This document shows positions 786 to 53,521 of a stretch of DNA of 64,000 nucleotides, one piece after another. The DNA comes from Oopsacas minuta (taxonomy: Eukaryota > Animalia > Porifera), in NCBI GenBank assembly GCA_024704765.1, contig JAKMXF010000061.1, forward strand, positions 1 through 64,000, read 5' to 3'. Made by a program: the position numbers and the translations under genes. The stretch's first letter is position 1. Each line of letters starts with the position of its first letter. The notes beneath the pieces were generated by a model. It was not told the DNA's origin. It ran no database searches and was given only the letters and a program-made list of their open reading frames with translations.

Positions 786-956
786 GTGCGATATCGTCAA
801 ATGGAATTTGAACGCAAGCACAAGCTTTATAATGATCATTGTATACTTCAAGATGGGCAATTAGATTCTAGTCCACTTTCTCATCAAATATTCTCTGGCA
901 ATGCGCTTATTCCCCCAATTCAACAACATCCTGTCCTACAACATCATCATACTTAA
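786..956 (+). CDS. CBFB: Putative terminal coding exon (exon 2) of core-binding factor beta: VRYRQMEFERKHKLYNDHCILQDGQ...VLQHHHT*
   Basis: Strong acceptor (ctttctttattttctcttctctcAG, AG at 784-785), phase 0, open for 56 codons to TAA at 954-956. Joined to the phase-0 donor at 16077 it gives RAQLEEKLRKDAMEQ|VRYRQMEFERKH, which aligns without gaps to the vertebrate CBFB stretch RAQQEDALAQQAFEEARRRTREFEDRD (recalled from memory). Not in the ORF track. Confidence 0.75.
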   Translation: MRYRQMEFERKHKLYNDHCILQDGQLDSSPLSHQIFSGNALIPPIQQHPVLQHHHT

Positions 957-2048: not shown

Positions 2049-2390
2049 AGGGCATTCAAAAAGTTCCCATCTTTGTTTAATACCTTGACACTACAACAAC
2101 TTACTAATAAAGTTTCTACATAAATGCTCAAAATACTCCCCCTCTAGATCAATTCATTGTTACCTCTCAACCTACTTCGAAATGATTTTGTATTTTCGTC
2201 CTTGTCTACTGAATTTAGGTAGTAGTAAATGCCGTTTCCTAGCTCTTTTCGGGTATGAAAAAGCCATCCTTCGAGATGTTTGTTCACCTCAGGAAATAGC
2301 CAGAAACAAGGTGGTAGATCTGGGGAATACGGAAGATGTTCAGATCGTTTCAAACACGATATCCCCAATGACTCTCTTAACCTATTTTGA
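2049..2390 (-). pseudogene. mariner transposase C-terminal remnant with one TIR-like end
   Basis: ORF 2144-2368 has HLPYSPDLPPC-FWLFP (mariner YSPDLAPxDF motif). The end at ~2049, agggcattcaaaaagttccc, resembles mariner termini. Confidence 0.65.
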
Positions 2391-3829
2391 AAAATGAGGC
2401 CTGATATTATCGTGGAGAAGTTGGATTCCTCGAGTTCCTGTACGCGGACGTCGTGTATTATAGTCTCTCCCGACTTCCCTTAGGTATTTATCTGCGTAAA
2501 ATTTTCCATTGAGTCGTTCTCCTTTAGGCATAGGTATTTGGGCCACTGGCTCATTCGCATAAAAATTATGTTATAGAGAACTTTATCGTCTCGGCAGTCT
2601 GGATGTCCCTTTGGGGGGATAAGAACCTTTTGGGAGCCGTGACTGGCTTTGTTCCTACGCAGAGGTTCAGAAAATTTAATCGAAATTTCGTCACCTGTAA
2701 CGATTTCATATAACTTTCGAGAATTGCATCTCTATATTCTTTAAGCAATTTATTCGCGCATGAAACCCTCTTCTCCTTCTGCCCCTTTGTGAGGATTTTT
2801 TGTATCCATCGCGCTGATATCTTTCGATTTTCGAGATAATTGTGTAGAATTGTATGAACGCTTCCCGATGAGATTTCCAGGATGGAGAAATCTCTTCAAC
2901 GATCAAATGGAGGGCCAATATCCAATAGTTCTATAATTTGAGAGGCTATTTCAGGGGTAGCGGAAATTGGTCTTCCGGTCCGAGGGGGCATCTTCATTGC
3001 TGCCCCTACCAGCCTTTAATTTACGTGCCTATTCCTTTACAGGGGGATACGCTAGAGCTTCCCCCCATGATAAACGGTGACGAGATCCTCGTGTATCTGG
3101 AGTGGTTTGTCGCCGAATACGGTACAAATCATTATATAGGCTCGTTTGGTTTTTCTTGATGTAGTGAAACCGCGTTAATACAAACACATTTAATACGAAT
3201 TTCCGTTAAGACGAACAGAATCTTACACAATTCTCGTCCGTACATTGGATATTCCATTGTTTTTACTCCGGATAGGGAGTACAAATCTCGACGGTTCCTT
3301 GTTGTAAGTATTCACGAGGTCCTACTGTATGTGTTTTGAAGCCATGAAAAAGTTGACTCTCGAAATAGGTACAATTGAAAGTAGCGTAGATCAAGATATA
3401 TAATAGCTAGAGTGAATTGCTCAACATACAACAGCATTAAATCGGTAATCGATAGAACTATAAGGATATACTATGTTTTCATGTAATTGAGTAGAGTTTG
3501 GATGCTATGAACTAAGGATGGGAACTTTTTGAATGCACCAAGTATTTATGAATCTTACATAGTCATAGAATTCATAAATAATATTATAAATAGGTAGTTA
3601 AATCATCCACATTTTCTATTCTATATTATCTAATTGTAGAAATTTGGAAACTAGAAGACTGGAGGCACAATATCATTCATTTTATCTATTTCGATCTTAG
3701 GTTCATATAGATAATAGACTGTAGACACATGGAATCTCTAGGCCAAACTTTCTCCTCTGTCAGTTTGTTTTCAATAATCAGTTGTATTACTTATTGTTGT
3801 TAACATCCTATATTTGGGCCTTAAAATAG

Positions 3830-5350
3830 TACATTAAGCTTGTATAAGGGCAACTTCTGAGATATGATGCCGTATCTCGGAGTTACCTGTATACACACAG
3901 CTTCGCAAATCTTTAATTCCCGCAAATATTATATACATCTCATATGTCAAGGTGGCAGATCTAAGAAACATCCTGATTTCGCTGCCATACACTTGTGTCC
4001 AGACCCAACTGCCAATTAGTGTACACATTTTATATTTCCTTCAAGTTCAACAAATCTTGAGGAGAATATCATCCACTATTAATCTTCCACCTATTGAAGA
4101 ATTCCCGCTAACATTTAGAATTCTGGAGGCCTAGTTGGCTCTTGGTTGCCATACTATCTATAACCAACAATATACGAACATTAACACAAAGTATGTAACT
4201 CTATTTTGCGTAACCCAAACTCTATCAACACACATCGAACACGGTTGTTTGGCGAAAAAAATTCTGATTTCTCCATTCTCACAGAGACCCATCTATCTTT
4301 GTGCTGTGAATGAATGTAATATATATCCTGAAATTTATGAAAGATATTGTAAATCCTGAAACGGCCAGGCGCTGAGCTGGTGTATCTCTCGATAAAGGTC
4401 CAGAAATTGTTGATATATTCCGATCAATGTTCGATGGAAAGTTGGAGGCGCTAGTTGTGAAATATACACTGCCGCACGCATAATTTCAGAGATAAGATAT
4501 TAGGAGTTGACGGATTCCCCATTTAACAAAACAATTACTGTTGCTAGACAGTTGTTTTCTGATATTGATGATAAATGTTCTTTCTTTGTAGTTCCAAATG
4601 CTGAGCGATCAGTATGACTGATAAACCTATTTCGACCATAGACATCAATTCAGCCCCTCCACTACATTTATAAACTGAAATATTTCGGTTTATTAATCGG
4701 CTGGTTTATCACCTCCATATCGAGAAATTGAGATGGTTCCGACTTCCCCCACGATCAAACAGTCGATGAACTTTGTTTAAACTTTAATTCAGAAATATAC
4801 TGGCTTGAGGTTGAAGATCCAGATACAAGTGGAGGAACAGCATGTATAGGCAACGTAGCTCGCAGAGCATTTTGTGATGAAACTGGTTATCTAGAATTCG
4901 CACAATCTACGTTTGCAATTTTCCATGTACTAGCATATGCAAAGATATATACTCAACTAGCTGCTATTCTCGAAATGTATAATTCCTATATAATGTGAAT
5001 ACTGTGGAATTGGGTGTGCAAAACATCTATCTATTGATTTTTGATTCATTGGCGAGTATCACACCAACGGTACACAAACTTTTAGCCATCCTTGAAGAAT
5101 TGCTTCCTGATTCCAACTCTGGATTTGGTTTATAACATTTCTCCGAAAAAGGAGCAAAGAGTTGTAATGAATTGGCTATAAACGATAGGGAAATTGGGTT
5201 CTAAAAGATGATTTCGAAACTACTTAAGTAATATTATGGACATATTTGTTAGATTGGCCTGAAATTGGCCTCTTCATTGAACTCTCTGGGATGTATAATC
5301 TGCCAACGATGTGGTTAGCCTGGACATTCATAAAGATCGAAATGTATGTC
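3830..5350 (+). pseudogene. RAG1-core/Transib-like transposase remnant (T1), heavily frameshifted
   Basis: Motifs in order: YTQLRKSL; degenerate first-Asp region (PLTFRILEA*LALGCHTIYNQ); SPFSQRPIY; RSMFDGK (~4425); SGGTACIGNVARRAF (~4830); frameshifted SITPTVHKLLAH/FSEKG region (~5050-5160); C-terminal CQRCG*PGHS*RSKC (5301-5345). Termini not found. Confidence 0.8.
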
Positions 5351-7689
5351 AGAAGATACTATGCAAACATCTGAGAGTCACACTTTTTCTTCCTTAACCA
5401 TTTAACCATCATTATTAACTACAATGACACCTTATGCATATTTCTGAATAAACTATTCTAATTAAGTGGCAAGTTTACCCTATATTTTTCCAAAATTTAG
5501 GAAACTGTAAAATTTCACGATTAGTGGATTATTGCATTATCGGCAACGGTAGAGACTTCCTAACTTCTATTTCAAATTTTAAATTACTATCTTTTATAGT
5601 TTTTAAAGTATCCACTTTCTACATACCTCCTTTTTCTGAATTTTAGTCTAGATTTCGTCATGAAAACCTCAATTTCCCATGAACTTTTTAGCCGCCATTT
5701 TTCCACTGTCGTTATATGTCTAACTCTGCATGTATACAAGCTAGATTCAAAGACTCAACTTTTTTGGATGGATCTAACAATCTACAGGATAATAAGCGAA
5801 CTAATCTTCAATTAATGCAATAAAACATTATTTATAAAATTTAAAATTTATGTCATTCGACGTCAAATCATATCCCGAACTGAATTGACCACCAGCTTGC
5901 TCCATTTTGGAAAATTCAAATTCTAGTTCGCTTATTAGTCAATTCGAAGGAGTAGTAACAGAATCCCAAAACTATTTGAGGAATATAGCCAAAAACATTC
6001 TTAGAATTTTCAAAAATATTTTAGGCTAATTGAAAAATCTAAAGTTTCTAATGTACATATATGTTTAAGTATTAGTGTATTTTTGGACTCAACTGGATGA
6101 ACCGGATACGCGGTTAAAATTTCAAAAAGATCGAACCACAGGGACATATATAGTAGGTCTCTAGGGTATACTTACCTGTTAATAAATATTTTCAAACATA
6201 TAATATCTTTAAGAAATAATCCTTTATGACGTTTTATAATGAAAATCGAAGCCAATATTTTTTGGATTCCTTTCGACCCGCAGAGATCGATAGCCCACAT
6301 GCTGCTAACACATTATATGTATCTAGGATGCATAAAAAGTCCTATTCTTTACCAAATTTCAGTTTAGACCACCGTGCGTTATTCTACTACAATCATAATG
6401 CAATAATTCACCGAATAAATTGAATTGATATCAGTGCAAACTATATAGTTAGGCTAATTAATTAGTTGGTTGAGGATATTCTAATAGGCTCAGGAATATA
6501 ACAGTATGAATAAATTTCCATAGCTCTGACATGACGTATCCTTGACTCAAATCCGTCATTTAGTATCATTGCCCTAGTGTACAGAATGCTATGTGTAAGC
6601 TTTAAGCTATATTTATTAGATGGCTATATTATTTGTATTCTATAAATACCTATTTGTAAGTATGCGGCCATACTTTAGATCACTAATCAGAAAACTGCAA
6701 CATTCACCCTCAAATTCAGTAAATCTCATGTAGAATATAATTTATTCTAGTAATTGTTTTAGACAGGCGATGATAACAACAATGATTGATTGCACGATTG
6801 TATTAATTATAACATTCAGATAATTTTAACATAATTTCGTGCAGAAAATGTGTTAAATATATCCGGTTTCTATAGTCCATATAATCTCTGGAATTAGAAA
6901 GATGGAAGCTTGTTCTTGAGGTATTACTGGCTATTTTAGATATTTTACTAAGAATGTAGATAATTAATAGTACTAACGTGAAAAATCAACACAATGTTTG
7001 ACAACCGTTATGAAGCGATATTCGATTATAAACATTGCTAAATTTACAACAGATAACTAATTTCAAATTTTTCAAGAAAAGTTGCCCGTTCAGTCTCTGA
7101 ATTATGGGAGCTACGTATCAATCTTCATAATCAGCCAAATAGTGTATGGATCAGAATGATGCCCTCAAATTTTCGACCTCCTTTTCTTGACTAATGCGAA
7201 TTAATTATCAAGTTGGAATTGCTATAATATTGTACAATGGTTACAAATTTGACATATTGGTTGCCATCTACATTCATGTCATAACAAATGCTTGCCAACT
7301 GTTTTGTGATCTTCAAGGTAGATTATGTCAAGGAACAAATTTTGAAATGCTTCAGGATAGCCTTTCGTTCCTTTTCGAATATCAGTGTATCCATATGGTC
7401 CATCACGTCCGTGAATTATCGAAGCCCTTCGACTTTGAGTAATGGGGCGCGAAGAAACAAATCAAAAAGGAGAAGAGGAGAGAGTGTCAGGTCTTCGTAA
7501 AACATCCTTGACATCTGAAAATTCTTTCGGGAATTCTACAGATATGAACAACAACGATCTATCGCGGATAGAGGTCGCTTCAAAGATGTTGGTGTCCAGG
7601 TTCGTTCACACCCCGTTTCTAGAAGATTATCATTTCCCGGAATTCCCATATCACAGTTGACAATGTAGTCATATGTATGGGATTTCCAC

Positions 7690-10530
7690 GGGAGGTGCAC
7701 CTATTCTCGCAGCACCTAAAACTTCCGCAAATATGCTCTAAGTGGATACCTCATTCCCTTTAGGTACCCAAAGACCGCTGTTTTTGTGCTTCTAAAGTTA
7801 CCCTCAGAGTACGGGATGCTGATTTCTATCAGAAATAATTTCTGAGAATGAGACATGGATTCGATATGATGAACCGCTCTCCAAGGGTAAAATATGGTAG
7901 AGATCCTAAAAGGAGAGGAGCGTCCAGTCAACCCAAAGGGCCATTTTAAGAGATTAAAGGTCCTATACTCAATATATTTATGCTCATGGTCTGGTTGTCC
8001 AGATAACCCAAGGGCATACGTACGTCTCCTCCTAATCCTCAAAAGTCTCCTCCTGATTGACACCCTCATTCATAGTCATTCCTGGCTTCCGACTTAAGTA
8101 GTCGGCAACTGGATTTTCCCTGCCTGTCCTGTATTACGTTTTAAACGGTAGTTTCTGAAGTTCCATTAACCAACGGACATACGTATGTTTGGGATTTTAG
8201 CCACTTCAGGGGGCAATCGTCAGTCAATCAGACAATACTAGGAGCAGATTTTAGGTAGACTGCCCATTTACGGCACGTCGATACCACTGCCCATGCCTCT
8301 AACTGTCCCGACGAGTAATTCCTTTGTGCTGCTGTTAGGGATGAGCAGAAGAATTGGATCGGTCCCAGTTTAACTGTCTGCATGTCCAGTTGTGACAATA
8401 CAACATCGATAGTAGTTGACGGTGCCCAAGAACCTCTCTAACTCTGTTAAAGATCTCAGGTGAGGAAATGCTTCCATTTCCGGACATAATCAGGAACAGG
8501 ACTTCTTCCTGCGCCTGAGATTCGGTGACCTAGATACTGCACTTCCCTGTACCCTAGCTGACACTGGTCCTTTATTAACTGCAATCCGATCGAGTCGAGA
8601 CGTTGGAAGACAGTTCTTGAGTGTAGAAGGTTTTGCCCAAATGTCGAAGAAAATACGAATATGTCGTCGACGTAGCTCTCGCAGTTGGGTTCCTTTTCAA
8701 ATCCTCTGTCCATAACTCTTTGAAACGTGGCAAGTGCATTGCACAACCCGAAAGGCATCATTAACATTTCATACATCCCCCAGGGTGTGGAATACCGTCT
8801 TCTCTACATCTTCTGGATGAATTGGGATGGCTCAATATTCAGAGGCGATATCGAATATAGAGAAATATCGCCTCCCTAGTAATTTATCGAATATCGATAG
8901 GGGGTCAGGTAGAGAGTAATCGTCACTTTTGGTCACTGAATTCAATCGACGATAATCGAGGGCATATCGTAGGGTTCTATCTTTCTTGTTCACCATAGCT
9001 ACATCAGAAGACCATGGAGATTTTCTGGGGCTACAAATGGGGGGGTCTGCCACGAGTACTTCTTCCATTGCCTGGAAATTATATACTCTCATCGGGGAGG
9101 TATGCGTTTATGACGTGACCTTTGGGGTGGTACGTCTCATATTAAATTTGCATGAGACTCATTGAACTTGCATCTATTCGGGCGTTTGTGATGCTGTGCG
9201 AACAAGAACTCGTATCCCGAATTCAGTTCCTCGCGTTTGGAAACACTGCTAACATTCAATTCGGGGCAGATAAGCCTTCCACTTCCACGGGGGGTTTATC
9301 TGCTTTCTTCTCTACATCTTGTTGCTCCGCTACCTTCGCACGTATCAGGCGATTAGCTCCGCTGAAAGAGTATTCTTCGAGAATCCATGCCGTCCTAATC
9401 GAATCGGTCGATTAGCCCAGTCAAACGTGACAGTCCCATGCTGTTCCAGAAAATTTCTCCCCAGAAGCAGGAGTGGTTCTTTCTTATCAATTTCATGGCT
9501 TTGTTCCAATTTCGTTTCAGAATTCCCTATCCGGATCGAAGCGTCGACAAAAGTATGGACTCGCACAGGGCTATCGCACAGTCCAATACTTTGCTCGTTG
9601 CGGTACAATGTCATTAATTAGTTGGAGTTGTGATGCTGTGTCGTAGCCCATGACACTGGGTTTCGCACCTGTATCCAACATCGCAGCCATACTGTGATCC
9701 CCGATTCCGACTTGAACTGTTACGGATTCTTCCCTGTAGTTATTTCGTATATCCTGCGCTTCTGATCCCATGGTCTTCTCAGTTTACGGGGACATTTAAA
9801 CGGTTTGTGACCTGCTTCGCCACAATTATAGCAGTGCTTGTTAGGGCAATTGCCAATTAAATGATTTCTCGAGCCACATGCATAACATTTCAGGGGCGTA
9901 GTTCTAGTTTTCCTAGGGATTGTGGACTTGGTCCGGATACTTGAAACCTTGGTGGGAGTGGGCTCTCTGTTGCTTGACTCATCACTCTCCATGTCCTCTG
10001 ATGTTGTTTTCACTTCAGAGGCCTTTTCCTGAACGCGTTGTATGCGACACCCCCGATCCAATGGAATCCCCTTCTCTGCGAGTGCTTTATGAATTACTGT
10101 ACTCAACTGCAGAGCTTCGTCCATTGATAGTCCTTCATCCTTGGTCCTCACCCATTCTTTAAGCTTGGTTTGCACTTCGGAAGTACTTGAGACACCATAA
10201 ACATACATGCTGTTTTTGTCTTGATTTCAGCGTTGACTGCCTCTTCAAGGAACCTCACAAAGAAATCTTGAACGGGCTCTCCGGGGGACCATGCCATGCC
10301 ACGGAAGCTCGCTGTGGATCAAGACCTCTTCCTTCGTGTCCAGAAGTTCCATTAGATAAGCGAAGGCTTCAGCTAGTGTGTCCTTAGAGACTGCTCCCAA
10401 GACCACTTTTTCTTCGAGTCGACCGCGAATGATGTGAGCTGGTAACAGTTTAACCCCCGCATTTCTTCTATTGTTGCTATTGCAGCCACAAATAAGGGTT
10501 GTCATCTCCCAATGGTCTGACCGTGTTTTA
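7690..10530 (-). mobile_element. Degenerate Ty3/Gypsy LTR retrotransposon internal region (gag, protease, RT, RNase H, start of integrase), internally deleted
   Basis: Two CCHC knuckles (CYACGSRNHLIGNC, CYNCGEAGHKPFKC); protease MLDTGA; RT motifs SPWSSDVAMVNKKD..LRYALDYRRLN, MPFGLCNALATFQR, YVDD; RNase H QRNYSSGQLEAWAVV...NPVADYLSR (~8100-8350). PR-RT-RH order is Gypsy type. Confidence 0.9.
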
Positions 10531-10535
10531 AGTGT

Positions 10536-10766
10536 TGTAAAGCTACAGTGAGTTCAGTTGCCATAGTTGAAACATTTGTTATTTATGTAATGAACTAAGT
10601 AGTAGAATGCCGAAGCAGAATGTGAGTAAGATTAATAGAAATAACAAACAGATTAAGGCAAACAAATAAAATGTAGATGTCCCTATATATAAATATTGTA
10701 AGCCTATAGACAGGTGGTACTACAAGCACCTTGTGTGGCATATTATAATTAATCATAACGGTTACA
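10536..10766 (-). repeat. Candidate 5' LTR of the Gypsy element
   Basis: 231-bp segment bounded by TGTAA...TTACA directly upstream of gag. No second copy in the window and no clear primer-binding site. Confidence 0.4.
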
Positions 10767-12177
10767 ATAATATATGGTTGGGTCGGGAAGCTTTAGAAGC
10801 TCATTAATTTTAGAAATGAGTTGATTGTACCAAGAAATGATTGTTCTATCAACTTATTTACCCTTCCTCCAACTCATCCAATTTGGTTAGTATCAACTCG
10901 TTTATGTTGGCATTACCAACATAATCAAGAAAATGAATTGATTTTGAAAAACCAATTGGGTTGATATAGCTCTGTAATATATATATAGTGGGTGAGTTAT
11001 CAAAAATCTGAAAAAGAGAGCATGTTCCCCAATTAGTGATCCCTGTCTGACGCCTTTTCTGTTTCTTGCCAAGTGACCCGATTGTAGGTTACTCTATTAA
11101 GTGGAGTCTAGTGAATATTAATTTATTAATAAAACGCGAGTTAATAATGAATTTGTTGTAAGAAATATATAGAAATGTAATTGGGTACTAAATCATCTTA
11201 ATGGCAAATTTAGATAGGGGGCCTCTGAAACTATTATAGTACAGGGGCTTAAAATTTATCAAGCAGTTCCAAAGCAAAATACAACTCAATAGTGGCTTTC
11301 TAACATAATTTGCTCGATATTTTCAAATATTACTAAATTTACTACAAATATGGCAATTTACCGCTGAATGTCTGATATATTGACTACAGGGAAAATTTTT
11401 TGCAAATATCAAAATTGTATGTTTTGTCTAACTGTTTCAGATAAACCACATCTGTTCATATGTAATTTTCTTTAGTTCACCGATAGTCGAACAGACATTT
11501 CAGCACCGCCCACCGCATTAAGTGAGAGGAAAATATGATTGATCAGAAAAGATAGATTTTATTGATATTGGTTTTGAAATTTGAAATTTGAAATTTCCTA
11601 GTCGATTTACTCTGACTAACAGTTGAGACGAATATTCTAACATCATTCTGAAATATTTTCAAGGTGTGAAAAACTATAAATCATTTGATAAATCTGTGAA
11701 TTTGTAACTATTAAATTGTGACAATATACACATATCAATAATTTCAGATGCCAAGTACACATCTAGAGGTAGCTACGAGTATACATACAAGATTTTTAAG
11801 TCTTTTTACACTAACATAATAGATTCTTTTGAAAGCTGTAAATTTCAACTGTTTAGAGCTGTTGCGTAGGATTTTGACTCGCAATCCAAAATCCCAATAG
11901 CATATCCATGGTGCGGGTCAAAATCCTACGATGTAATATATGCGTGGGATTTTGACTCGCATCCAAATGTATTATTCTTGTAGGATTTTTGACCCATGTA
12001 TTACACAACTCAACAAGATTTCTCATCAGAGATCACATACATTCACCTTAGCATACTTTTGAATGCTGAACTCGAATCTGCAATCAGAATTTCTCTAGCA
12101 CGTCTAGTTATTCTGAAATCCAATATCCATTTTTTCAATAGTATAGTATTACCTGGTTACTAAATTGCTATATGAGN

Positions 12178-12392
12178 TTCAGTTTAGTGAATATCTAGAT
12201 TTCTGTATTTACTGTATATGGTAATTACGATTACGTCATATATGGAAAACCTGATGTGATACAACAAAATTGAAATCAACAAAAGAACCGCAATAGTCGA
12301 CTTACTAAGTAATAATGTATTTTATAAGCCTATCTCTAAAATTGAACGCGTAAAACCCTAATACTAGCAATTCGCAATAATAGCCCACTGTG
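12178..12392 (+). mobile_element. Isolated right end of the RAG1-like/Transib family of 17545-20741
   Basis: Near-identical (a few small differences) to 20526-20741. Ends in CACTGTG (12386-12392), begins immediately after the single N at 12177, and is followed by CAGCTC. Confidence 0.95.
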
Positions 12393-14500
12393 CAGCTCCA
12401 CGCCTAACATCATCTACATCAGGATCAAGAGCTAAGAAGGTGCAGGCAGCTAATGAGGCTGCAGACAAGATCCAAGATTTCGACCACTTCTCCGTCAAAA
12501 TATGTTCCTATTTTCTTGGCTTTATCGTCATAAAAGACCAGAAAAACCCATACCTATCAAGAACTTGCGCTACTGTACAAACTGTCAAGCAGTTCTTTCA
12601 TTTTCAACAAGTCAGTTCACCATTTGGATTCCTATTCTTGAATAGAGTTGACAAAGATGGTTTTGAGGTGTCCGAGCGACTATTTCCTTTGCAGAAGAAC
12701 AGCTAACTTTCGAATTGGTCCCAGATTGGATACATAACTGACCAGGTAAACGCCTATGAGTACACAAGCCAAGAAATTCTTGAGCACGCAATAAGTCAGC
12801 TCTGCAAGATGACTGAGGCGCACGAGCTTGCTCATTTCACCTTCCTTCTGTCGCAGTTGTGCCTTATATTCAAACCTCCTGATGGACGCCGATTTGACAC
12901 TGATCCTATGATTTTCGCAGTGCAGCTTCACAAAATATCACCCAGTGCATACAAAATGATTCGCCGATCCGACTTAATCATTCTGCCATTCTGCCATCAA
13001 CAGAAAGGGTAAAACAGATGCTTGCTAGGAGTCTGCAGGACTCCCACCTCAAAATCTTTTTCGACCAGCTTAAGCCACAGCAGAGTTGATAAATTTAATG
13101 TTTGGCCAGGTAGAGCGGGTCATTGCGACATTCTGGAGGGCATGTTCTAGGATACTCGCAAAATACTGTAGCGGGTGGTGACCATGAAATGCATTGCTTC
13201 ACATGTTATGGTCGTTGAGGTTGCCTGCCATTTTGGTGGTCCACGCTATATTCTACGCCTTTTGCCTTGCAAAAAATACGGATCAGCTGAAAGAACTCCT
13301 TATCGAAGCTGGTTCAGCTGTAGTTGGTGCTGGCGGAACTGTGATTTCTTTGATATGCGATAATTGCAATACCAACCGCAGTGTTTATTCAAAACCTAGA
13401 GGATCTGGAAGTTGTCAAGTGCTATCGACTCAAGAACAATCTATTTTCTTAGTTCACGACTACTTGCACATCTTCAAACATATACGGAACAACTGGATTA
13501 CTGTTGATAGCAAAACACTCATTTGTCGTAGATGGCAATGAGTCAAAAGCTTACTGGAGTGATGTTCAGAAGCTTTATGAGATTGACAGAGCTATTCCTA
13601 TTCGCTTAACCAAGCTGACACACACCGCTGTTTTCCCCAAACCATTTCAACGGCAGAGCGTACCATTGGTATGTTAAGTGTTCAATGCAAGACTGTCGCT
13701 GCCTTGAGGACGTTCAAGGGTTCACTGGACATCAGCGAAGGCACCTTCATTCTCACCCAGGCAAAGTGTGAGTGGTTCAAGATAATGAATGTGAAAGACC
13801 GTTTCTCAGCTCTCTGTCTTCAGGACGAGTCCAGACAGCCTTGGACAGCAGACTGTACAAGTTTAACTAGGCTGGAGGAGTCCTGCCAAATTATATCTAC
13901 CTGTGCATGGCTAAGAGGTTGTGGTCGTAAGCTGAAGCTAACTAAGCAAACTGCTGAAGCCTTCACTGTGTCCACACGTAATAATGTGGATGCTGCCAAA
14001 TTGCTTCTGGCGGACAGAGACTTTGACTACGTTCTTCCTGCTATATTCGCGGACGAAGCCTTGGAAAAGTTTTCGGCCAAGCCAGGCAAAGAAGAGGTGG
14101 AAACTTTTACATTGACGATATCCTCTGCATAAAGTTGTTTATTTGGCCGGGTACCTTGTTTATAAATATGGTGATACCATTAGTATGGAGGAGATCATTG
14201 GTGATGAAGATGGTAACGAGGTGTCTTCTGAGTTCCTAGATAATTTGAATAGAAGTGGATTGTGTGTGCCGACTATGTCAACCGTCTTTTTTGTACCCAA
14301 TGTCTATAATTTGCATGACCAGACTAAATTGCGTTGCAGCTTTCATTTTTGCTGAGCTATTATCTTTTGCAGATGCACCTTTAGCAGATAATAAGGCTGC
14401 ATGTACTACTTTAGCTAATATTCTATTGAAAGCTCATGTGCTCAATGTAAGTGATAAAGAAAAGTCTGGGATGCCTCAGGAGGCAAGACAAGCTCTCTAA
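12393..14500 (+). pseudogene. THAP/P-element-like transposase, central and C-terminal part (continuation of 17264-17544)
   Basis: AVQLHKISPSAYKMIRRS..ILP, LICDNCNTNR, VHDYLHIFKHIRNNW (DxxH), RQSVPL, WFKIMNVKD, FADEALEKF. Many frameshifts and stops. Confidence 0.85.
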
Positions 14501-14564
14501 CTAACGATAGGTATAGGCAATGTTGTAATAGACATAGTGTTGTGACATGCAAATATTGTACATA

Positions 14565-14704
14565 CAGTAGAACTCGGATAAGACGTACCTCTCCGGGAAG
14601 TCTAAAATAGTACGTACTATCCCAGTTTACGTACTAACCGAGTTGTATTACATAGAATCATAGGTAATGATGAATTTTGGTTCATAAAATTTGGTACGTA
14701 CTAA
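14565..14704 (+). mobile_element. pogo/Tigger-type terminus running into the assembly gap
   Basis: TA followed by CAGTAGAACTCGGATAAGACGTAC with internal tacgtac repeats. Other end not seen. Confidence 0.4.
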
Positions 14705-15133
14705 NNNNNNNNNNNNNNNNNNNNNNNNNNNNNNNNNNNNNNNNNNNNNNNNNNNNNNNNNNNNNNNNNNNNNNNNNNNNNNNNNNNNNNNNNNNNNNNN
14801 NNNNNNNNNNNNNNNNNNNNNNNNNNNNNNNNNNNNNNNNNNNNNNNNNNNNNNNNNNNNNNNNNNNNNNNNNNNNNNNNNNNNNNNNNNNNNNNNNNNN
14901 NNNNNNNNNNNNNNNNNNNNNNNNNNNNNNNNNNNNNNNNNNNNNNNNNNNNNNNNNNNNNNNNNNNNNNNNNNNNNNNNNNNNNNNNNNNNNNNNNNNN
15001 NNNNNNNNNNNNNNNNNNNNNNNNNNNNNNNNNNNNNNNNNNNNNNNNNNNNNNNNNNNNNNNNNNNNNNNNNNNNNNNNNNNNNNNNNNNNNNNNNNNN
15101 NNNNNNNNNNNNNNNNNNNNNNNNNNNNNNNNN
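14705..15133. other. Assembly gap (429 N)
   Basis: Run of N. The poly-X ORFs in the track are artefacts of it. Confidence 1.
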
Positions 15134-15638
15134 GAAATTTAACTTACATAAATGTCCATGGGTAACAAATATAGACAAAATTTCAGATTTGAATTCTCAC
15201 TTTCAGGTCGTATTTTTAATAGATAAGCGACCCTACTAGTCATGACAAAAATCAATAGGTAAAGGTTACAAATATTTAAGAAAATGATATTTTTATAAAC
15301 TTCCAAGACTCCTCTACCGAATGATATTAATTTCGGGTAAATCTGATGAGTACAAGTAGAACAAATTAGTGATTGAAATGATCCTGGTCGAATATCCTGC
15401 AAATTCACAGTCTAATATAGATGAGTTAAAATCTCATGGTGAAAGGCTGTCCCTGGTCCAATTATACTAATGAGTTCGAATCTCACGTAACAGGACTATT
15501 AGTGTAATGCTAATCAGATTTAATTGTTCGGACTTCCCCACGATTTCACTCCTATGAACCTTACACTTTTGCAGCCATAATAAAATTCTTAAACACTAAT
15601 TTATCTTTCACCTATTCTTTAATTTTAGCCCATTTGAA

Positions 15639-16076
15639 ATGCCACGTGTGATTCCTAATCAGAAGGAACGATTTGACAAAGATGAATTATTCAAAAAGTT
15701 GACCCAAGATTGTGAAGTGAAATACTCTGCATTTCGTGATTTGCAACATGAAGAGCGTAAGAAGAAATTTCTCGAATCAATCAAAGAAGGTTACTCCACT
15801 ATTTCTTTCGTGAATACTGGCAGCAATCTTTCTCTTCAATTTTGCCGTAATGCTTGGTCAGATATTCGTGAAGACCGCTTGCCGACTCCTGATTTTGTGG
15901 ACTTCTCTAGAGAGGAGGGTAGGGTAAATTTGGAAGCCTTTTTAATATTCAATGGAGTTTGTGTTAACTGGGTTGGGTGGATTGATCTCGAATCTTTATC
16001 AGGTAAGGCAAAATTTGTTTTCAACTTTGAACGAGCTCAACTTGAAGAGAAATTGAGAAAAGATGCTATGGAACAG
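15639..16076 (+). CDS. CBFB: Core-binding factor beta (Runx partner), exon 1, 146 codons; unspliced read-through stops at 16100
   Basis: MPRVIPNQKERFDKDELFKKLTQDCEVKY...TGSNLSLQF...FNGVCVNWVGWIDL...FERAQ matches the CBFB/Brother family end to end. Donor CAG|GTAATA at 16077, phase 0. Confidence 0.97.
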
Positions 16077-17263
16077 GTAATAATCCCTTTAAGTGAATAA
16101 CACTGACAATTTTCGTTATATTTCAACTAGAAAGAATTGGTGGAAAGCTGGTTATTACCTCATTCGAAGCTCATTTTTAGCAGATTTTCATACGTTATCC
16201 AATAATGCATGAGTGCGTTTTGGGTAAATGTTTAGAGCACTTTACATTTCCACTTATCTAGTGAATCGCTACTAACCATTTCAAATCCACTCCAATAGAC
16301 TAAATATCATCCTATTGGATCTCATCGTTAGTTTGCCACCACTTTGATATGTCAGTAATCAAACTATTTGCCCTTTGCATCGCGGAATGAGTTAAGAATG
16401 TTCTGGCATTCAATTGTCGGAATGTGTCTAACTCTATCGTGTGACCTATTTTTCGTCCCTGCTAAGGCTAGGTGACAGTTTTACAAGATAGTCATTCCTT
16501 AATTATACCTCTCGGGTTAAAGCTTATTTAGTGGGATAAACTTTTTTAAATTTTGTATATTCCGCATAGATCGTAACTATAGTCATTTCATTATCTTGAT
16601 CGATTGATTTCTTCTATCAATTCTATTTGTCTAGAAATTTGTTATTCTGATAATATATGATTGGTGCATTTGACTCCGAATAATGTGTATTATTGCTGAA
16701 TATGAATTAATAGGCTCTGTTTACGAACTCTTTCTAGGCGATTATGAAGTTATTTGAATGGTTGGATTTGAACATCTTCAAAATCTCTCCCTTCAGCGGT
16801 CTATTCCGTCCATAGACTCCTTTAGAGAAGGACTAGAACGTCGCGATCTCAGGGTTTTAACTTGAGTCTGAGAAGCTCCAATTTTAATATTGAAAAAGCA
16901 TTAGAACTTATATTTACCTGTGGTTGGGGGCCAGACACCACCAGGAAGCTTAAAATGAGAGTATTGGCCACATTTCCCTTTGACCTTATGCAGATATGAA
17001 CTTCCTGTTTTCAACCATATTTCCTTATATCTTCCTTCTGTTTTGGGATATGTGCATATTTTGTGCAGTGGTTGCGTGTTAATAATTTATTTTTTGTTGC
17101 AAATATGTCTTCATGTTTATTGATATTGATTATGCATGATAACGTGTCATATGTCCAGACTTTTGAACATATTTTACTGGATTGATACTCTGATATTTTG
17201 ATTGAACCTTTCTAGCTGGTGATCTAACAGGATCTTTGTTTTGTTTTCCGCTTTTGTGACAAT

Positions 17264-17544
17264 ATGCAACGTCGTTGCAGCTGTTTTGGTTGTAGTGTAA
17301 ACTATGATGGGACGCCTTAACTAAAGCTCATATCCTTCCCAAAAGATCCTGGGGACAGAAAGAGATGGATATTGGCAATGCCAAATGAAAAATAAAGCTT
17401 GAGGCGCTTGAAGGAGATATATATATTTGTGAGAGACAGTTCAATTGTGAATGGGTGTCAGTAAAGGGTTGAAAGCGATCCAAAGAACCGCCATCAATAT
17501 TCCTGGAGTACCGAAATCAGTTTTTACGCAGGTAACCTCAGCTC
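17264..17544 (+). pseudogene. THAP domain N-terminus of a P-element-like transposase, interrupted by the RAG1-like element
   Basis: MQRRCSCFGCSVNY...FPKDPGDRKRWILAMP...ICERQF...PPSIF(P)GVPKS with stops and frameshifts. Ends at CAGCTC directly before CACAGTG. Confidence 0.85.
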
Positions 17545-20500
17545 CACAGTGGGCTACTAGGATACATTAGGCCCAAATTCTTACCTTCAATTTATACCAT
17601 TTTGAATTATGAATTAGATTCTAGATATATTCAACAAGCGATATGTAAAGTATCAGATGAAACAGTTAAGTATTCTATTTTTGTGGTCAATCAACTGTAG
17701 GACTTCATTGCTGTATTCTATGTTTATCCAAACATTATATAAATTACAGAAGCAATTTCAGTAATCTTTTGAATTTCTGATGCATACTATTGTTCATTTA
17801 CATGCTTTCCAAGCAAGTGAGTGCGCTGAAATTGAATCTATCATTGAATTTCTTCAGGAGCGAAAAGATTAATCAGATATTACGGATACGATACTGGGAA
17901 AATTTTGTAGAAATTTCTCCCTCCGCCATAAGCCATCCTGTTGGCAGCAAAATTTGTTTGCACTAGTTTCCACACTGAATTTTTAGTATGTATTCTTCTC
18001 AAGTATTATAACCATTATATTCAAAGTACAAATGCCGCTTCATTGCGCAACATATTAAATATTGTCAAATTCCATTCTCACATCTACGTTGCTATGGTAC
18101 AATGTAATGTAATTACATGGTAATTTACACCAATATAACGTATAATTATTTATATTATACTGCATATTACGAGGTAGCACACAAGTTCATTAATTTGATA
18201 ACCTATTAAACCTCTAATTATCAATGTAAAGATGGCTGAAGCAACAATAGTATCTGAAAGCCCGAAAACACGTCTTGACTTGGCTATTATATTAAAGGTT
18301 CACGACTATGATATTAATCAAGCAGCAGATGAAGTGGTGCGTATACTAAATCTCGAAGAGGAAAGAGACATTCAGTATACTCTCTAATGTCTAAAGTATC
18401 AATAAATTTCAAAAAGAGTAAGAAATCTAATGAGAGCTTAGATGGTGAGTGGTGGAGTGCAAGTATTCCATGGATACTTGTTAAACCTAAGAGTACCCAA
18501 TCATCCCTTTCTGTTTCAGACTGTGATGTAGAAAGCGGTGTTATATTGGTTCCAAATGTAGAGAGGAGAAAATCAATTGATGACATTCAAGTTCGTTCAA
18601 AGAAGACAAGGCTTGATCAGACTGGGATACTTACTTCCATCCGTCAGTTAGCACAACTTGAAAATATTTCTGTTATTCCCTACGTTGCTCTCCTCCTGTA
18701 TATTGTAGCTGTAGAACAAATTGGTTTTAAAGGCATCACAAATATCGCTTGGAAAATCTATAACGAAGAATCGATACCAACCCTCAGTAACATAGTTTCA
18801 CCAGAAAAATCAACATTCTTAGCATATCAACTTAAGCTGGGAAAGGAAAATGGAGGGATCTTAAATATTATCTCCAATCAGAAGGCCTCGTTTTGGCAAC
18901 TTGGGAAAAAATTAGTGAGATTAGAAAATCAATTGTTCCAACATTCGACTGGTATCCAAATGTTTTCAATCCTATAGGGGTCTATATATCTTACTCATCA
19001 CATGTAATTTCTCTCTTTGACCGGTTGTTAAAAGAATGTGTGCTAAATTTTCCTGCACCACACTTCTATCCATTAACACTCAAAATCAAGCATGGACTGG
19101 ATGGTTCTGGATCTCATTCCTCTCCTGGGTTATTGTCAGACTTGAATATAGACTGATCAAATTATATTGTCTTCATGGTTTGACCCCTTCAGGTAATAGA
19201 TCGATTCGGGAATGTTCTGTGGGAAAATAGCCATCCTAACTCCTGTTTTTCCAACCAACCAGTAGCACTTATTTGCCAAAAGGAGACTATTGACACTATG
19301 ATAGAATTGAGCAAGTAACTAAACCCTGAAATTGTTTCACTAAATGAGAATGGTTTTGATCACCTAAATGGCTATGTTAAAGTAGAAGTCAAAGCTTCAA
19401 TGTTTGACGGAAAAACGTTAGCAACAATGACAGGTAAAGGAGGAGCGCCATGTATTGCCTGCAAAGCAACCCGAAGTGACATCAATAGTATTACGAAAGT
19501 TGTTTACGGGTTTCCTTTAGATTGTTCTATAGAGGATATCAAAGAGACAATCCGTCAGTTAACCTCTGATGGAGAAGAGCTGATGAGCTACAATACAGAG
19601 CAATGGTGTGGGATTACACACGAACCTGCAAGTGGCATTGATGTATTTCCTGCAGCACCTTTACATTCTTACCTAAGGATTTTAGATTGGTTTTTGAACC
19701 TCATCTACCGAATTGCAGCAGGAAAGTCCAAGTGGACTGAAGATCAAATGGGGCGAGATTATCGAGGTTTAGTATACAAGCGTATCCATGAGCTTACGAA
19801 CTTATTATTCCACCAACCAGGAGGAAGTGAGAACACAAGCACTGGTAACATGACAAAAACATTTTTGTCATATAAAAAATTGTGTTTTAGGATCGCTTTA
19901 TCGTTTGTACCAATGTTTATAGAGATGCTCTGACAGAGATTCACAGGAATCTATCTGCATTGCTCAGAGTTGCTAATAGTTATGAAGTTGTCGATGTAGA
20001 CAGATTTCGTGTATTAAGTCAAGAAACCTACATACTAATCTTACAAACCTTTCCCTGGGTATCTATTAGCAATACACTCCACAAATTCTTGGCTCATGCC
20101 CATCAGTTTATTGAGAGAAATGACAGGGTAGGATTGTGTAGTCTTTCTGAAGGAGGGTTAGAACAAGGACACAAGTTGATCCGAGAGTTCCCAACACATT
20201 TGAGGAGGAATCAGATTTTCTAAGTGGGTTAACTGATGTTGCAATGAGGCTCTATATCTATGGTTGTCCAATTCTGAATGAAAAATTCAGAAGGATCACA
20301 ATTTGTTCCATCTGTGATCAAGTGGGCATCAAAAGAATTGTGTAAAAAACAGGCAAGGTGAAAACGTTACTAATAATATTGATAATGAAGATTCTCTCCC
20401 TCAAAATTCCATAGATGAAATCTTCTTGTATTTAACATTAATTCATCAATAAGATATTCGTATGTTAGTTATTCTTCAGTTACCATTGCCATTATATATT

Positions 20501-20741
20501 CATATTCTATTTCTTCTAATAAAAATTCAGTTTAGTGAATATCTAGATTTCTGTATTTACTGTATATGGTAATTACGATTACGTCATATATGGAAAACCT
20601 GATGTGATACAACAAAATTGAAATCAACAAAAGAACCGCAATAGTCGACTTACTATACAGTAATAATGTATTTTATAAGCCTATCTCTAAATTGAACGCG
20701 TAAAACCCTAATACTAGTAATCGCAATAATAGCCCACTGTG
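17545..20741 (+). mobile_element. Full-length (3197 bp) RAG1-core/Transib-superfamily DNA transposon (T2), single gene, pseudogenised
   Basis: TIRs: left CACAGTGGGCTACTA (17545), right reverse complement CACAGTGGGCTATTA (ends 20741); 14 of 15 identical. Transposase fragments lie in between. Confidence 0.92.
18232..20420 (+). pseudogene. RAG1-like/Transib transposase of T2 (~720 aa if repaired)
   Basis: NBD-like RKSIDDIQVRSKKTRL; GLDGSGSH (Asp 19100, D600-like); MFDGK (Asp 19406, D708-like); CIAC; PLHSYLR; TSTGN; LHKFLAH; SEGGLEQGHKLIR (Glu 20161, E962-like); C-terminal CSICDQVG(H). Several frameshifts. Confidence 0.92.
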
Positions 20742-23018
20742 AACCCAGTTACTTTGAATATTTTCCATACCTGGTTAATAAGATCAAGAAAATCTACTGT
20801 TTGATTGATGTGTTTGGTGTCATTTTCGATTTTCACGCTAATAGGCTGGCAGATGTTGTCTCATGAAAAATCTTCAATGCAAACTGACATTTTGCCGTTC
20901 TAAGCTTGAGGGCCAACAAGCTTTCGCTGTTAATTTTGGTGCTCGTTTCAATAAATTACATCTATCCGATCTAAACAAATATCGTACATCTTGAAATAGA
21001 GCGAAACTAATATCTGGATATACAGATTTAGAGGTCAAATTGGCAGTAGAAATGCTGGCTCTAGGGATGGAGAGGCAAAAATTTTTGTTAGTGTCAATGA
21101 TGTTTTGAATACTTACTAGACATTCGTCGAACTTCGGAAAAATGAAAGTGTTGTCAATATTTTTGAGATTCAACCAATTATTTCGGATGCACTTAATGAT
21201 ATGAACACTATCAAAAAGCAAAATTAAATTTCTATGTGGGTTGCAGGGGTGTTGTACTTTTGGCTCCAGTTTCGAACTAGTTGAAAACAATTTGTATAAA
21301 CGAACGTTCAGTGGATAGTTGTCAGTACAAACAGCTTCTACAAATAGACCGCAAGCTTCGATATCACAGATAGTAGACCTGACAATAGGATACAATGATT
21401 CAGCAGAAGAAGAACCCAAAGGAATCAACCGAACAATGGTAGAAAACTTGGCCGATAGGCTAGAAACCATCATGGAGAAAACTGTGGTATATGGATCATT
21501 AGGATTGTCAATCGACCCAATTACTCTCCCTCCCTTATATGATGCATCACCACGGATATGTACCTCATCCATTTGAAGAATAACATGGCGTTCTAAATTA
21601 TTGAATGTAGTGGCAACTTCCCTGAGAATTTTTGTATAATCACTCTCTAAGCCGATACTATTTTTTACTTTCAACAAATTACGCTCATGAGGAAAAGTTA
21701 AGCAATTAGAGCCCTGAATGAGACGGTAACAAGCTGGGGAAATGCCGTGAATTTTTAAACAAAAGACCAGAGTGATGATGTTATAACGTCGAGCATGTTT
21801 ATCAATGATTAGATATTTCAACTGATCGAGCAAAAAAGTAAGACGCATTCGTAAAGAAGCCTCAGCGATTTCGAAATATAATTTGGAATCAGTGTGCTCT
21901 AATGTATCAATAGCTTGACCAAGACTATGAATAGAGTTCTCCACATGTTGTATCAGAGATGTCGCAGAGGTATTTGTATTAGTACTTGGAGATATTTCAA
22001 TAAATCAACTTCATGTATAATGTTTTCTAATAACCTGATATCATTTATTGAGGAAGACGAGAGCTGAATTTTGTTCTTTTCTTTATAAAAAGACTTACAA
22101 AATAAACTTTCATCGACAATTATACATCGTTCAATAGTGGAAACTTCGTCACAAAATTGAATCTTAAGAAATAGTATGTTAGAAGAATCAGGGCGATGGA
22201 AAAGCCAACCGTTTGGGAGTTCGATCATGTGCAACTCAGATATAATACAACTAAGACTCGAAATCCTGAACTTAGCTTCTGTCTCTTGAAATTCTGTTCG
22301 ACTTTTCTTGTATACATCCTGCATCCTCTTCTCCTCTTTATCGTCTAGAGATAGCCTTTGGGTTTTAGCAACTGCATCTGTGAAATAAGTTGGACAATTT
22401 GGAAAGATACTAGGAACTGCAAATTTCTTAAGAACAACTTTTTTCCTGGGCATCTTGATCATCTCAACTCCGTTATAATATTCAATATTCCTCTCGATAT
22501 CTTCTTCACGGAAATGATGTATACAGACCTATAAAGATAGAAATAATTATACTATATCACAGGCAAATTTCTATAGCAACTTACCAAAAATCGTTTATTC
22601 TCCTCATAGTCTCCTTTCGGTGGAGGGATCGCTCGAAACCACTTTTCACGAGTTTCAACATCAGTAGGAAAGGAAAAAGTAGGCACATATGAATCACCTT
22701 GACTGTGATAATTCGACTTACAACCAGGTACTAGGTATGTCATGTTGAATATGTGATGATGCGTACAAATATTGCAGTAATTGGAAGAAACGAAAATATT
22801 TACAATAATTATTATATATTATCAACATTGAATACAAAATTTATGGGTGGGTAAATATTTTTCATATTAAGACGTTTAAGACACAAAATTTCAAAAGTAA
22901 TCACAAATATTGACGCTAATACATAGTTTGCATGTTGCTACATAAGATGAATTTTAACTCAAGGCTCGAACTTGTTCGTTCCAAGCCCAAAGTACCCCAG
23001 TATGCAATATCAGCCCTG
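20742..23018 (-). mobile_element. THAP/P-element-like transposon, C-terminus cut off by the T2 right end
   Basis: THAP (VPGCKSNY..FSFP...KWFRAIP..VCIHHF..AVPSIFP); ORF 20874-21944 with LQMDEVHI, VCTDNYPLN, LFDSVHIIKCIRNNW, LERQNV; a degenerate reading continues to the junction at 20742. Candidate left terminus CAGGGCTGATATTGCATACTGGGG at 23018 is tentative. Confidence 0.88.
22529..22584 (-). other. 56-nt spliceosomal intron within the THAP domain
   Basis: GTAAGT...ctttatAG, phase 0. Removal gives ENKRFL|VCIHHFREED, restoring the THAP CxxHF motif. Confidence 0.85.
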
Positions 23019-26149: not shown

Positions 26150-27427
26150 ACGTCAATTTCCTGAAATGGTTAAAGCTTGCAAGAAGAGAGTCACTCCGAC
26201 AAATATGACGTAACAGAGTATCTTTTGTATTGTCTTCAAAATTAAACTTGATAGGGAGCCCCTATCTGTAACTTCTGGTGTATTTGTTTAGGGATTTGAT
26301 GTATTCTTCAGCTGCATAAGTGATTTCAACCCGAAACCAAGATTATTTGTACGGGTATTCTGTTGTGGTTCAAATGTTGATACTAATTCTAGAACTGTTC
26401 TGTAAGGAAATATATCAATATAATGTGACAACTTTTGCTTAGGCAAGCATCACGCTATCATTGCATAAACTACTTGCTCATTCTGCGATCATTTTGCTGA
26501 TTACACAGATAATATCTTCCGAGTGAAAGTCATTGATAATCTATCTTGGGGTAATGATGATCAATTCTCCTACTTAGTGAAATCCCTTACATCAAGGAAA
26601 CAGTATCGTGCTATATTCCCTGTAGTACTGGCACTTCCATTGCATGAAGGAAGATCTATATGGAACCCAGTGTTTCCAATAAGAGATTTCGCATTGAAGT
26701 ATTGAAGTTTTGACCAAAGGGGAAGTAGGATTCCATCTTTCAGGCCGGCATTTAGGTGATAAATCAATAACATAAACCATGTATAATGGCACAAATAGCT
26801 ATCCAGTTGCGAAGCAGATATGATATTGATGTATTAAAATAGTGGATGAGTTAGTCCATACCTCATTTGAGATGGAGGCTTAAACTCTACATAAACTGTT
26901 GGTGATAAACTGCACATAATAGACCGCTCCACTGATGATGCTTGACATTTTCGATCAAGCATCATTCTCTTGAATGAAACATTGATTTGTCCCTGACCAA
27001 CCTTCAATCCAAGTACTTGACTTCGTCAACATTCTCCTTTGAAGGAATTAGAGCAACTAGAGGGCAACAAGGCGAACTGGGAGAAAATTAGTCAAAATTT
27101 CGGTTGCTGATTTATTTACAAGTGAGGGAACTTTAAACCCGAAGATAATAAATCATTTAATGGAAAGATTAGGATCAGAGTATATCTGATTAAATACCCT
27201 TAGACTTCCAGAACCATCGAAGCCATCAGTTAGCTCATTGGTAATTGGTAATTAAGACAGCTCCAAGGGAGGAAGCAATTGTAGTAATGGTTCAGCTGGT
27301 TTGTGTACAAACTTTGAATTTTGTATGCCTGAGCCGATTGATTCTCCCAGTTCATTATGGATTACATTGATTTCGTTGGCTGAGGTAATTTCACTCCGGA
27401 ATGCTGTTACCCTCTTGCAACCTGGAA
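26150..27427 (-). pseudogene. RAG1-core/Transib-like transposase remnant (T3), N-terminus replaced by a hAT end
   Basis: FPGCKRVTAFRSEI, DGFDGSGS (~27230), MMLDRK, YTWFMLLIYHL, GSASTTGNIARYCF, GFGLKSL, RKFNFEDN. Confidence 0.82.
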
Positions 27428-35478: not shown

Positions 35479-35602
35479 TTTGTCTTCATTGCCTCATTAC
35501 TTTCAAAGTCAAGACTAGGATCCTTAATTAAGATAATTATGTTATAAGTAAATCAGAGCCTAGTTCATTCATGTGCTCAGTTAATTAATTAAACTTCCTA
35601 TA

Positions 35603-53518: not shown

Positions 53519-53521
53519 NTT

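Follow-up and report, generated by a model that had tools for sequence, protein, structure and literature searches.

Inside-out Transib junctions around CBFB exon 1 in the glass sponge Oopsacas minuta: a nested insertion and a probable mis-ordering of scaffold blocks

Transib transposons are known to end in CACAGTG heptamers and to be flanked by a clean 5-bp target-site duplication (TSD), and transposases of the P superfamily (THAP9-like) present their THAP, helix-turn-helix (HTH) and RNase H-like parts in a canonical order. Outward-facing ends with one common target duplication are known from alternative (reversed-ends or sister-chromatid) transposition of Ac/Ds and P elements and from RAG inversional joining, events after which the DNA runs on unbroken through the newly made joints. 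Repeat-induced chimeric contigs and SSPACE-type mis-ordering are likewise recognized by anomalies at scaffold joins, contig ends in repeats, reversed blocks and hybrid repeats without a TSD. Likenesses to all of them were found at the locus studied here, which lies in the first 64 kb of the Oopsacas minuta scaffold JAKMXF010000061.1 (assembly GCA_024704765.1). This whole stretch of 64,000 nucleotides is the window, and its coordinates are those of the record. A preliminary description had reported a transposon right end preceding the left end, both bordered by CAGCTC, and had offered as explanations collapsed copies with mis-ordered blocks, ectopic recombination, or an inverse, RAG-like transposition. 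Our results indicate that Transib is truly inserted in an old P-type transposon within the single intron of CBFB, and that the inside-out order of its junctions is probably an assembly artefact and not a RAG-like rearrangement.

Both junctions were confirmed, each of them once in the window: CACTGTG-CAGCTC-cacgcc at 12386-12404 and gtaacct-CAGCTC-CACAGTG at 17532-17551 (CACTGTGCAGCTC from 12386, CAGCTCCACAGTG from 17539). At the left (17539-17544) and right (12393-12398) junctions the flank is the same 6 bp, CAGCTC. Since CAC opens the element and cac also follows the duplication in the right flank, 9 letters are common to both sides; the duplication counts either as 6 bp or, with one ambiguous C assigned to an end, as 5 bp, whereas the TSD of known Transib elements is a clean 5 bp. 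Evidence on joints and depth was taken from Logan contigs of sequencing runs (X1-X4). In three runs from the same sample, 17538 was joined directly to 12393 (a step back of 5146, with 9 ambiguous letters). One such contig of 543 nt (87 nt of THAP-side sequence and 456 nt from beyond the joint) is about 5% diverged and has a depth of 5 to 20x unique. These contigs derive from paralogues in which the P-like element is uninterrupted and which show the empty site of a nested Transib-in-P insertion. Because they join 17538 to 12393, both junctions come from one Transib insertion, and the order of the domains on the two sides of the joint also supports one insertion into one THAP/P transposase. The in-frame restoration on which this single insertion had originally been based weighs little, since the split gene is a decayed pseudogene; the paralogue joint is a better argument for it.

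The interrupted P-like element (copy 1, forward strand) is assembled in two parts. Its 5' part (16811-17538) shows multi-copy depth from about 16811, with loose contig ends there, and contains the decayed remains of a THAP domain (at about 17261-17525, with GVPKSVF as its end). In this relic the C-x2-C, FPKD and W motifs are accompanied by stops and frameshifts, and the THAP match is weak (E 0.077). The 3' two-thirds of the transposase pseudogene (12399-14550), in at least five ORF fragments, match the Tnp_P_element HTH at 12773-12988 (E 0.009) and the TNP-like RNase H-N domain at 13194-13541 (E 0.005), and have multi-copy depth and paralogue contigs about 5% diverged. Decay of the gene leaves each of these domain matches weak on its own. 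THAP, HTH and RNase H-N follow one another in the canonical order of P-superfamily, THAP9-like transposases. The single gene in separated halves that had been proposed is a pseudogene with stops, frameshifts and ORF fragments. No convincing terminal inverted repeats or target duplication of copy 1 were found that would tie 16810 to 14551.

A full-length Transib/RAG1-like element of 3.2 kb was assembled at 17545-20741 on the forward strand (CACAGTGGGCTA...TAGCCCACTGTG). Its terminal inverted repeats carry CACAGTG-type heptamers, with CACAGTGGGCTA at 17545 and TAGCCCACTGTG at 20730 and, in the upstream piece, at 12381. The likeness to known Transib elements lies in the CACAGTG/CACTGTG heptamers, in the RAG1- and Transib-like ORFs and in the flanking duplication. 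The Pfam RAG1 match (E 8.7e-4) is below the curated cut-off, the PDB gave a single match, to 6pqn, a Transib transposase from Helicoverpa (E 0.27), and the transposase ORF is in at least four pieces; unlike those of known systems, the Transib and P-like elements here are degraded or split into several ORFs. The right end upstream, as had been described, is present, but the 'element' there amounts to no more than the terminal 215 bp of a Transib copy (12178-12392, forward strand, ...TAGCCCACTGTG) placed directly after the N at 12177. It is 97% identical to 20526-20741, from which it differs at four sites (three small indels and one substitution). The assembled element has no TSD, its left flank being ...CAGCTC and its right flank AACCCA...; because of this, and because its right end is unlike 12178-12392, it is a hybrid of two copies. 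Both the Transib and the P-like families are multi-copy. The Transib left end (17600-17790) has a depth of 10 to 35x unique, and in the Logan contigs the Transib right ends at 12392 run on into at least 6-7 different flanks.

The assembled element is followed by a second P-like transposase (copy 2, 20742-22743, reverse strand), truncated at the Transib end and with a TNP-like RNase H-N match (E 8.5e-12). It presents THAP frames, and its gene call of 587 aa includes THAP. Copy 1 is similar to it by tblastn; the two elements are otherwise unrelated and no DNA similarity was found between them. The missing 3' part of copy 2 was sought at the end of the block that opens the scaffold (1-12176), with no similarity detected.

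The CBFB gene provided an independent marker of order. Exon 1 lies in the bracketed segment, as had been noted. The ORF 15639-16100 holds its 146 codons (15639-16078, forward strand, donor cag/gta), which cover nearly all of the conserved domain (Pfam CBF_beta, E 1.7e-51). It is 83% identical to glass-sponge homologues and has single-copy depth. The terminal exon (exon 2, VRYRQMEFERKHK...stop) was located at 786-956, also on the forward strand, after a polypyrimidine tract and an AG acceptor ending at 785. It is in phase 0, matching the donor at 16078, and no other CBFB exon 2 was found within the window. In the scaffold it stands 15 kb upstream of exon 1, whereas in a contig of a related glass sponge (L003) the homologous exon (55% identical, E 5e-14) stands 1.6 kb downstream; this marker thus shows the same kind of mis-order as the Transib junctions. 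The true CBFB terminal exon is 786-956 and not the annotated one ending at 16815, and the gene model is thereby corrected. With the blocks rearranged as proposed below, the transposon-free intron would be about 732 + 155 + 785 = 1.67 kb, versus 1.60 kb in L003. When the intron pieces 16079-16810, 14550-14704 and 1-785 were tested for collinearity with L003, the exons alone aligned, and no transcript-derived CBFB protein spanning exons 1 and 2 was found in the protein database. Comparison of the neighbouring genes with those of the relatives (L002-L005) revealed nothing in common but transposons.

The draft assembly was produced by hybrid SPAdes followed by SSPACE (-k 5 -n 15), Pilon and GapFiller, from paired-end, Nextera mate-pair and PacBio libraries, each from different adults. 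The region comprises three blocks, all taken on the forward strand: 1-12176, which begins at scaffold position 1; 12178-14704, a 2.5 kb piece between the single N at 12177 and a gap of 429 N (14705-15133); and 15134-20741, which follows this gap and holds exon 1, the P 5' part and Transib. The single N is a scaffold join at which Transib homology starts exactly at 12178. By convention, a single N from SSPACE, the program used here, stands for a non-positive gap; literature support sought for this convention was not found. The breakpoints of the anomaly coincide with these contig boundaries, and depth and loose ends place all four contig ends in repeats. The last 400 bp or so of the first block are a very high-copy repeat (depth at 11800-12199 of 50 to 400x unique in X1-X3 and 2.5 to 20x in X4), and the loose ends at 12176 run on as CATGCC... 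and not as the Transib end. A search of the rest of the window did not detect this CATGCC... sequence. The end of the middle block (14552-14704) is a different, low-copy repeat (2 to 7x unique, loose ends at 14552-14559) with a 17-bp tandem at 14611-14644. No Logan contig or joint was listed that bridges 12176-12178 or 14704-15134, nor was the collinear order found among these contigs (a full Transib between 17544 and 12393, or 14704 beside position 1); they break at every repeat, and the absence of a joint cannot be proven from them. Exact-protein look-ups with the CBFB ORF and P-like copy 2 gave no independent assembly of the locus, and that with the P-like ORF 13671-14129 returned the source record only.

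The breakpoints at the N and the gap, the hybrid element and the order of the CBFB exons led us to consider that the three blocks, [1-12176] N [12178-14704] gap [15134-20741], most likely stand in reversed order with their orientation kept. The true order would most likely be exon 1, P 5' part, Transib, P 3' part and exon 2. Transib, duplicating CAGCTC, landed directly behind the THAP domain of a resident, now decayed P-type element, and a recent insertion into a P-type element in the CBFB intron is documented. The reversal would be due to repeats, as Transib (3.2 kb) and the P-like element (2.9 kb) are both multi-copy. The assembler or the gap filler may have continued exon 1, the P 5' part and the left portion of Transib into a different Transib copy, with its right end and flank, which would yield a hybrid element without a TSD and orphan the true downstream contigs. 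SSPACE would then have placed these ahead of the big contig, at its free left end, plausibly because Nextera mate pairs were read in the wrong orientation, by which contig order would be swapped without flipping. Each of the two SSPACE joins needed at least 5 links, so some pairs supported the scaffold order; these pairs were presumably due to repeats or to mate-pair orientation. How exactly the assembler arrived at this order is our inference, as is the true joining of 14704 to position 1, and the probable mis-ordering is deduced here from sequence and contigs. Collapsed near-identical copies with mis-ordered blocks, one of the explanations in the preliminary description, fit all the tests made, namely those on the joins, the hybrid element, the multi-copy families and the exon order.

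Ectopic recombination had also been proposed. Homologous recombination could have taken place between direct Transib copies lying in P-like copies 1 and 2, with loss of the DNA between them, CBFB exon 2 and the 3' part of P included, on one haplotype or in one of the sequenced adults, and contigs of the undeleted allele were scaffolded in front; the genuine hybrid element would then be exon 1 - Transib - P copy 2. The absence of a TSD and the flanks from two different P-like elements agree with this, as does the use of different adults for each library. The only exact-match contig in the middle block has a depth of 35, and the exon 1 region one of 47 (X4); a copy number below the full one would agree with this, but a ratio of 0.75 is not diagnostic. 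Such an event requires a CBFB-truncating allele, and a collapsed 3.2 kb repeat with at least 10 copies yields a like contig without any biology. Recombination could account for the hybrid element but not for the inside-out order, which would still be an artefact, and this explanation was considered unlikely. As the middle block is almost all repeat sequence and both families are multi-copy, it could be a paralogue contig, from a P-like element with its Transib copied elsewhere, that was pulled into the scaffold. However, the paralogue contigs across the insertion site are uninterrupted, the depths just given are roughly single-copy for the exact-match sequence, and the intron arithmetic fits this block at the CBFB locus; another origin was considered very unlikely.

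If the scaffold order were real, exon 1 would have come to lie downstream of exon 2 and of the right junction through inverse (reversed-ends) transposition by the Transib ends, or through a series of duplications and deletions. The arrangement right end-TSD ... TSD-left end is the geometry given by inverse transposition, Transib ends carry the RSS-like heptamer CACAGTG, and there were enough SSPACE links for both joins. Nevertheless, both breakpoints fall at the N and the gap, while Ac/Ds, P element and RAG events leave continuous DNA. Two complete ends on the bracketed segment were not found: upstream there is only the 215-bp right-end stub starting at the N, and the downstream right end belongs to a different copy with a different flank. 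In addition, a third block (exon 2) is displaced too, unlike in those events, and a 3-2-1 block order with orientation kept is not the product of a single inverse transposition or of one tandem duplication. A conserved single-copy gene would also be split. The RAG-like transposition suggested previously has no evidence of its own and leaves the breakpoints and the upstream exon 2 unexplained, and we regard a real order of this origin as very unlikely. It is equally improbable that the scaffold order is real in at least some individuals or cells, with Transib ends or recombination between Transib copies having separated exon 1 from exon 2. If true, it would be striking, as a RAG1-like element would have reshaped a host gene in a glass sponge, an early-branching animal. 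None of the present results requires such a rearrangement.

With the mis-ordering of blocks as the preferred explanation, small repeat-bounded contigs beside N joins in GCA_024704765.1 can be order-swapped, and inside-out junctions or out-of-order exons in this assembly need long-read support before a biological reading. A second single N, at 53519, likewise adjoins a Transib-like fragment, which ends at 53516. A swapped order at that join was rejected, since the Transib-like pieces on the two sides of 52 kb cover overlapping stretches of the protein but have no DNA identity with each other; they are separate relics.

The preliminary description had read the strings CACTGTG-CAGCTC-cacgcc (12386-12404) and gtaacct-CAGCTC-CACAGTG (17532-17551) as the two sides of one transposon insertion, and both were found at these positions, each once in the window. 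A full Transib/RAG1-like element occupies 17545-20741 (termini CACAGTGGGCTA...TAGCCCACTGTG), and a right-end stub consisting of the final 215 bp only lies at 12178-12392, with 97% identity to 20526-20741, from which it differs by one substitution and three small indels. Judging from its domains, the interrupted gene is a decayed P-superfamily (THAP9-like) transposase. A THAP relic with stops and frameshifts, ending in GVPKSVF, was located at about 17261-17525 (E 0.077), and the upstream block holds a P-element HTH (12773-12988; E 0.009) and an RNase H-N piece (13194-13541; E 0.005). Read from the THAP part into the upstream block, these domains are in the canonical order THAP, then HTH, then RNase H-N. 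The full element is followed on its right, at 20742-22743 on the minus strand, by another, unrelated P-like transposase (RNase H-N, E 8.5e-12), and no DNA similarity was found between the two P-like copies.

Logan contigs of the four sequencing runs from the source sample (X1-X4) were placed on 11800-17790. In three runs a contig linked 17538 straight to 12393 (back-step of 5146, with 9 ambiguous letters), and one of these contigs measures 543 nt, of which 87 nt belong to the THAP side. They are about 5% divergent from the window, have a depth 5 to 20 times that of the unique CBFB region, and are uninterrupted P-like paralogues, which represent the empty site. A second joint, from 17337 to 14167 and also present in contigs of three runs, runs straight from the THAP part of the P-like element into its C-terminal region and likewise puts the THAP side ahead of the 12393-14550 side; it appears to come from internally deleted, probably non-autonomous, members of this family. 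Both kinds of contig therefore uphold the single-insertion claim. The duplication at the reconstructed insertion reads 6 bp (CAGCTC), or 5 bp plus one ambiguous C, because the flank continues with CAC, the same as the first three bases of the element (12393-12401 and 17539-17547).

The predicted assignment of 17545-20741 to the Transib/RAG1-like transposons is based on a Pfam RAG1 match of its ORFs below threshold (E 8.7e-4), on the sole match of these ORFs in a PDB search, which was to the Helicoverpa Transib transposase (6pqn, E 0.27), and on the CACAGTG termini. No target-site duplication was present around the assembled element, its right flank being not CAGCTC but AACCCAGTT..., and its right end is unlike the true mate end at 12178-12392; as a consequence, the assembled element is a hybrid of two copies. 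The family is multi-copy, with a depth 10 to 35 times unique in the Logan contigs, and loose ends at 12392 lead into at least 6-7 distinct right flanks. Within such a family, chimeric assembly paths or gap closures by GapFiller are expected. Other Transib/RAG1-like ORF relics, diverged and weaker, are scattered in the window (45851-46650, 50322-51764, 52872-53516, 62469-62639, 26744-26857 and 4608-4736); they belong to other Transib families and show 30-49% protein identity either with the full element or with a Transib-like ORF of L004, a contig from a related glass sponge, and one stops at the single N at 53519.

SSPACE prints a single n where contigs that do not overlap are joined and the estimated gap is not positive. 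The window contains N runs at 12177, 14705-15133 (429 N) and 53519, and both single Ns adjoin Transib-type repeat boundaries. The stub begins immediately 3' of the N at 12177, and the block carrying the right junction (12178-14704) is a 2.5 kb piece between this N and the 429-N gap that starts exactly where a 139-bp exact repeat, also present in the full element, starts. All four contig ends at these two joins fall within repeats: depth over 11800-12199 was 50- to 400-fold the unique level in X1-X3 and 2.5- to 20-fold in X4, another, separate repeat begins at about 14552, and 15200-15600 is repeated too. Contigs reaching 12176 run on into CATGCCTATTTTG... and not into the Transib end, and among the contigs and joints listed none bridged the N at 12177 or the 429-N gap, although absence from Logan is not proof. 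The end of the first block (11800-12176) is a very high-copy repeat with recurring ggattttgac motifs, probably a MITE-like family, whose depth reached about 140 times unique in X1 and more than 400 times in X2. The assembly was produced with hybrid SPAdes, SSPACE (-k 5 -n 15) and then Pilon and GapFiller, from Illumina paired-end, Nextera mate-pair and PacBio libraries, each made from a separate adult (PMC10280926).

The CBFB gene, an independent marker, shows the same displacement. Exon 1 lies in the ORF 15639-16100 (CBF_beta, E 1.7e-51), and the terminal exon, at 786-956, is placed 15 kb upstream of it; this exon has a polypyrimidine tract and an AG acceptor in phase 0, matching the donor cag/gta at 16078, and no second copy was found elsewhere in the window. 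In L003, a related glass-sponge contig, exon 1 (10001-10438) is followed 1.6 kb downstream by the homologous terminal exon (12043-12210; 55% identity, E 5e-14). Once the blocks are arranged as exon 1, P 5' part, Transib, P 3' part and exon 2, the intron of the glass sponge Oopsacas minuta would, without its transposons, measure about 732+155+785 = 1.67 kb; the value in L003 is similar, at 1.60 kb.

All in all, the inside-out geometry is quite probably that of a mis-ordered, repeat-chimeric scaffold; the event behind it is an ordinary insertion of one transposon into another within the CBFB intron. The preliminary description had offered collapsed copies with mis-ordered blocks as one of three options, and this is rated the most likely, as it fits the joins in repeats, the hybrid element and the displaced exon 2. 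The scaffold shows three blocks in the order 3-2-1 with orientation kept, the first of which (1-12176) begins at the end of the 82.7 kb scaffold JAKMXF010000061.1 (window, 1-64000), an outcome of neither a single inverse transposition nor one tandem duplication. Wrongly oriented mate pairs would swap the order of contigs without flipping them and so give this pattern; with inserts of about 4.2 kb, the apparent gap at 14704-15134 would be about 430 bp and that between the first two blocks negative.

The other two options, ectopic recombination and a RAG-like inverse transposition, both take the scaffold order as real; they are improbable, have no evidence of their own and conflict with the 215-bp stub, with breakpoints falling on an N and a gap, and with exon 2 lying upstream. 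The hybrid element could also be a genuine recombinant: two direct Transib copies could have recombined homologously, with loss of exon 2 and the P 3' part from a single haplotype or adult. Within the small block, the one contig that matches exactly has a depth of 35, versus 47 for the exon 1 region, which does not decide on this, but the inside-out order would even then stem from scaffolding the contigs of the other allele. The small block (12178-14704) might also derive from a paralogue, a reading that is not favoured.

The main value of the finding is as a caution on N joins in the GCA_024704765.1 assembly. It also corrects the CBFB gene model, whose conserved terminal exon is 786-956. The TopHat settings (maximum intron 5000, no discordant pairs) made the true CBFB splice unmappable. 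The annotated model LOD99_10780 (171 aa, P0001) has a non-homologous tail, AIMKLFEWLDL..., encoded by a predicted exon whose end (about 16815) falls on the 5' boundary of the P-like element. In X4, depth was 10,000-60,000 over CBFB exon 1 only (15600-16199), versus about 47 for the adjacent intron, and a contig begins at 16049, 30 nt (k-1) ahead of the donor site at 16078, a start consistent with branching at that site. These observations point to abundant spliced CBFB RNA or cDNA in X4; the splice partner of exon 1 was not among the loose ends listed for this run. A Harbinger-type pair (DDE_Tnp_4 and a Myb-like protein) is present at 34741-36659. Two contigs from related glass sponges (L002, 9408-11336; L003, 6518-8601) carry such a pair too, a few kb from CBFB and with differing positions and orientations. 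Finally, the window carries a 1.39 kb direct repeat (37942-39319 and 59730-61122; 96.8% identity, 21.8 kb apart) and, at 8832-10505 on the minus strand, fragments of an LTR-retrotransposon-like gag, with CCHC zinc knuckles, and of pol, where GC is raised to 46%.
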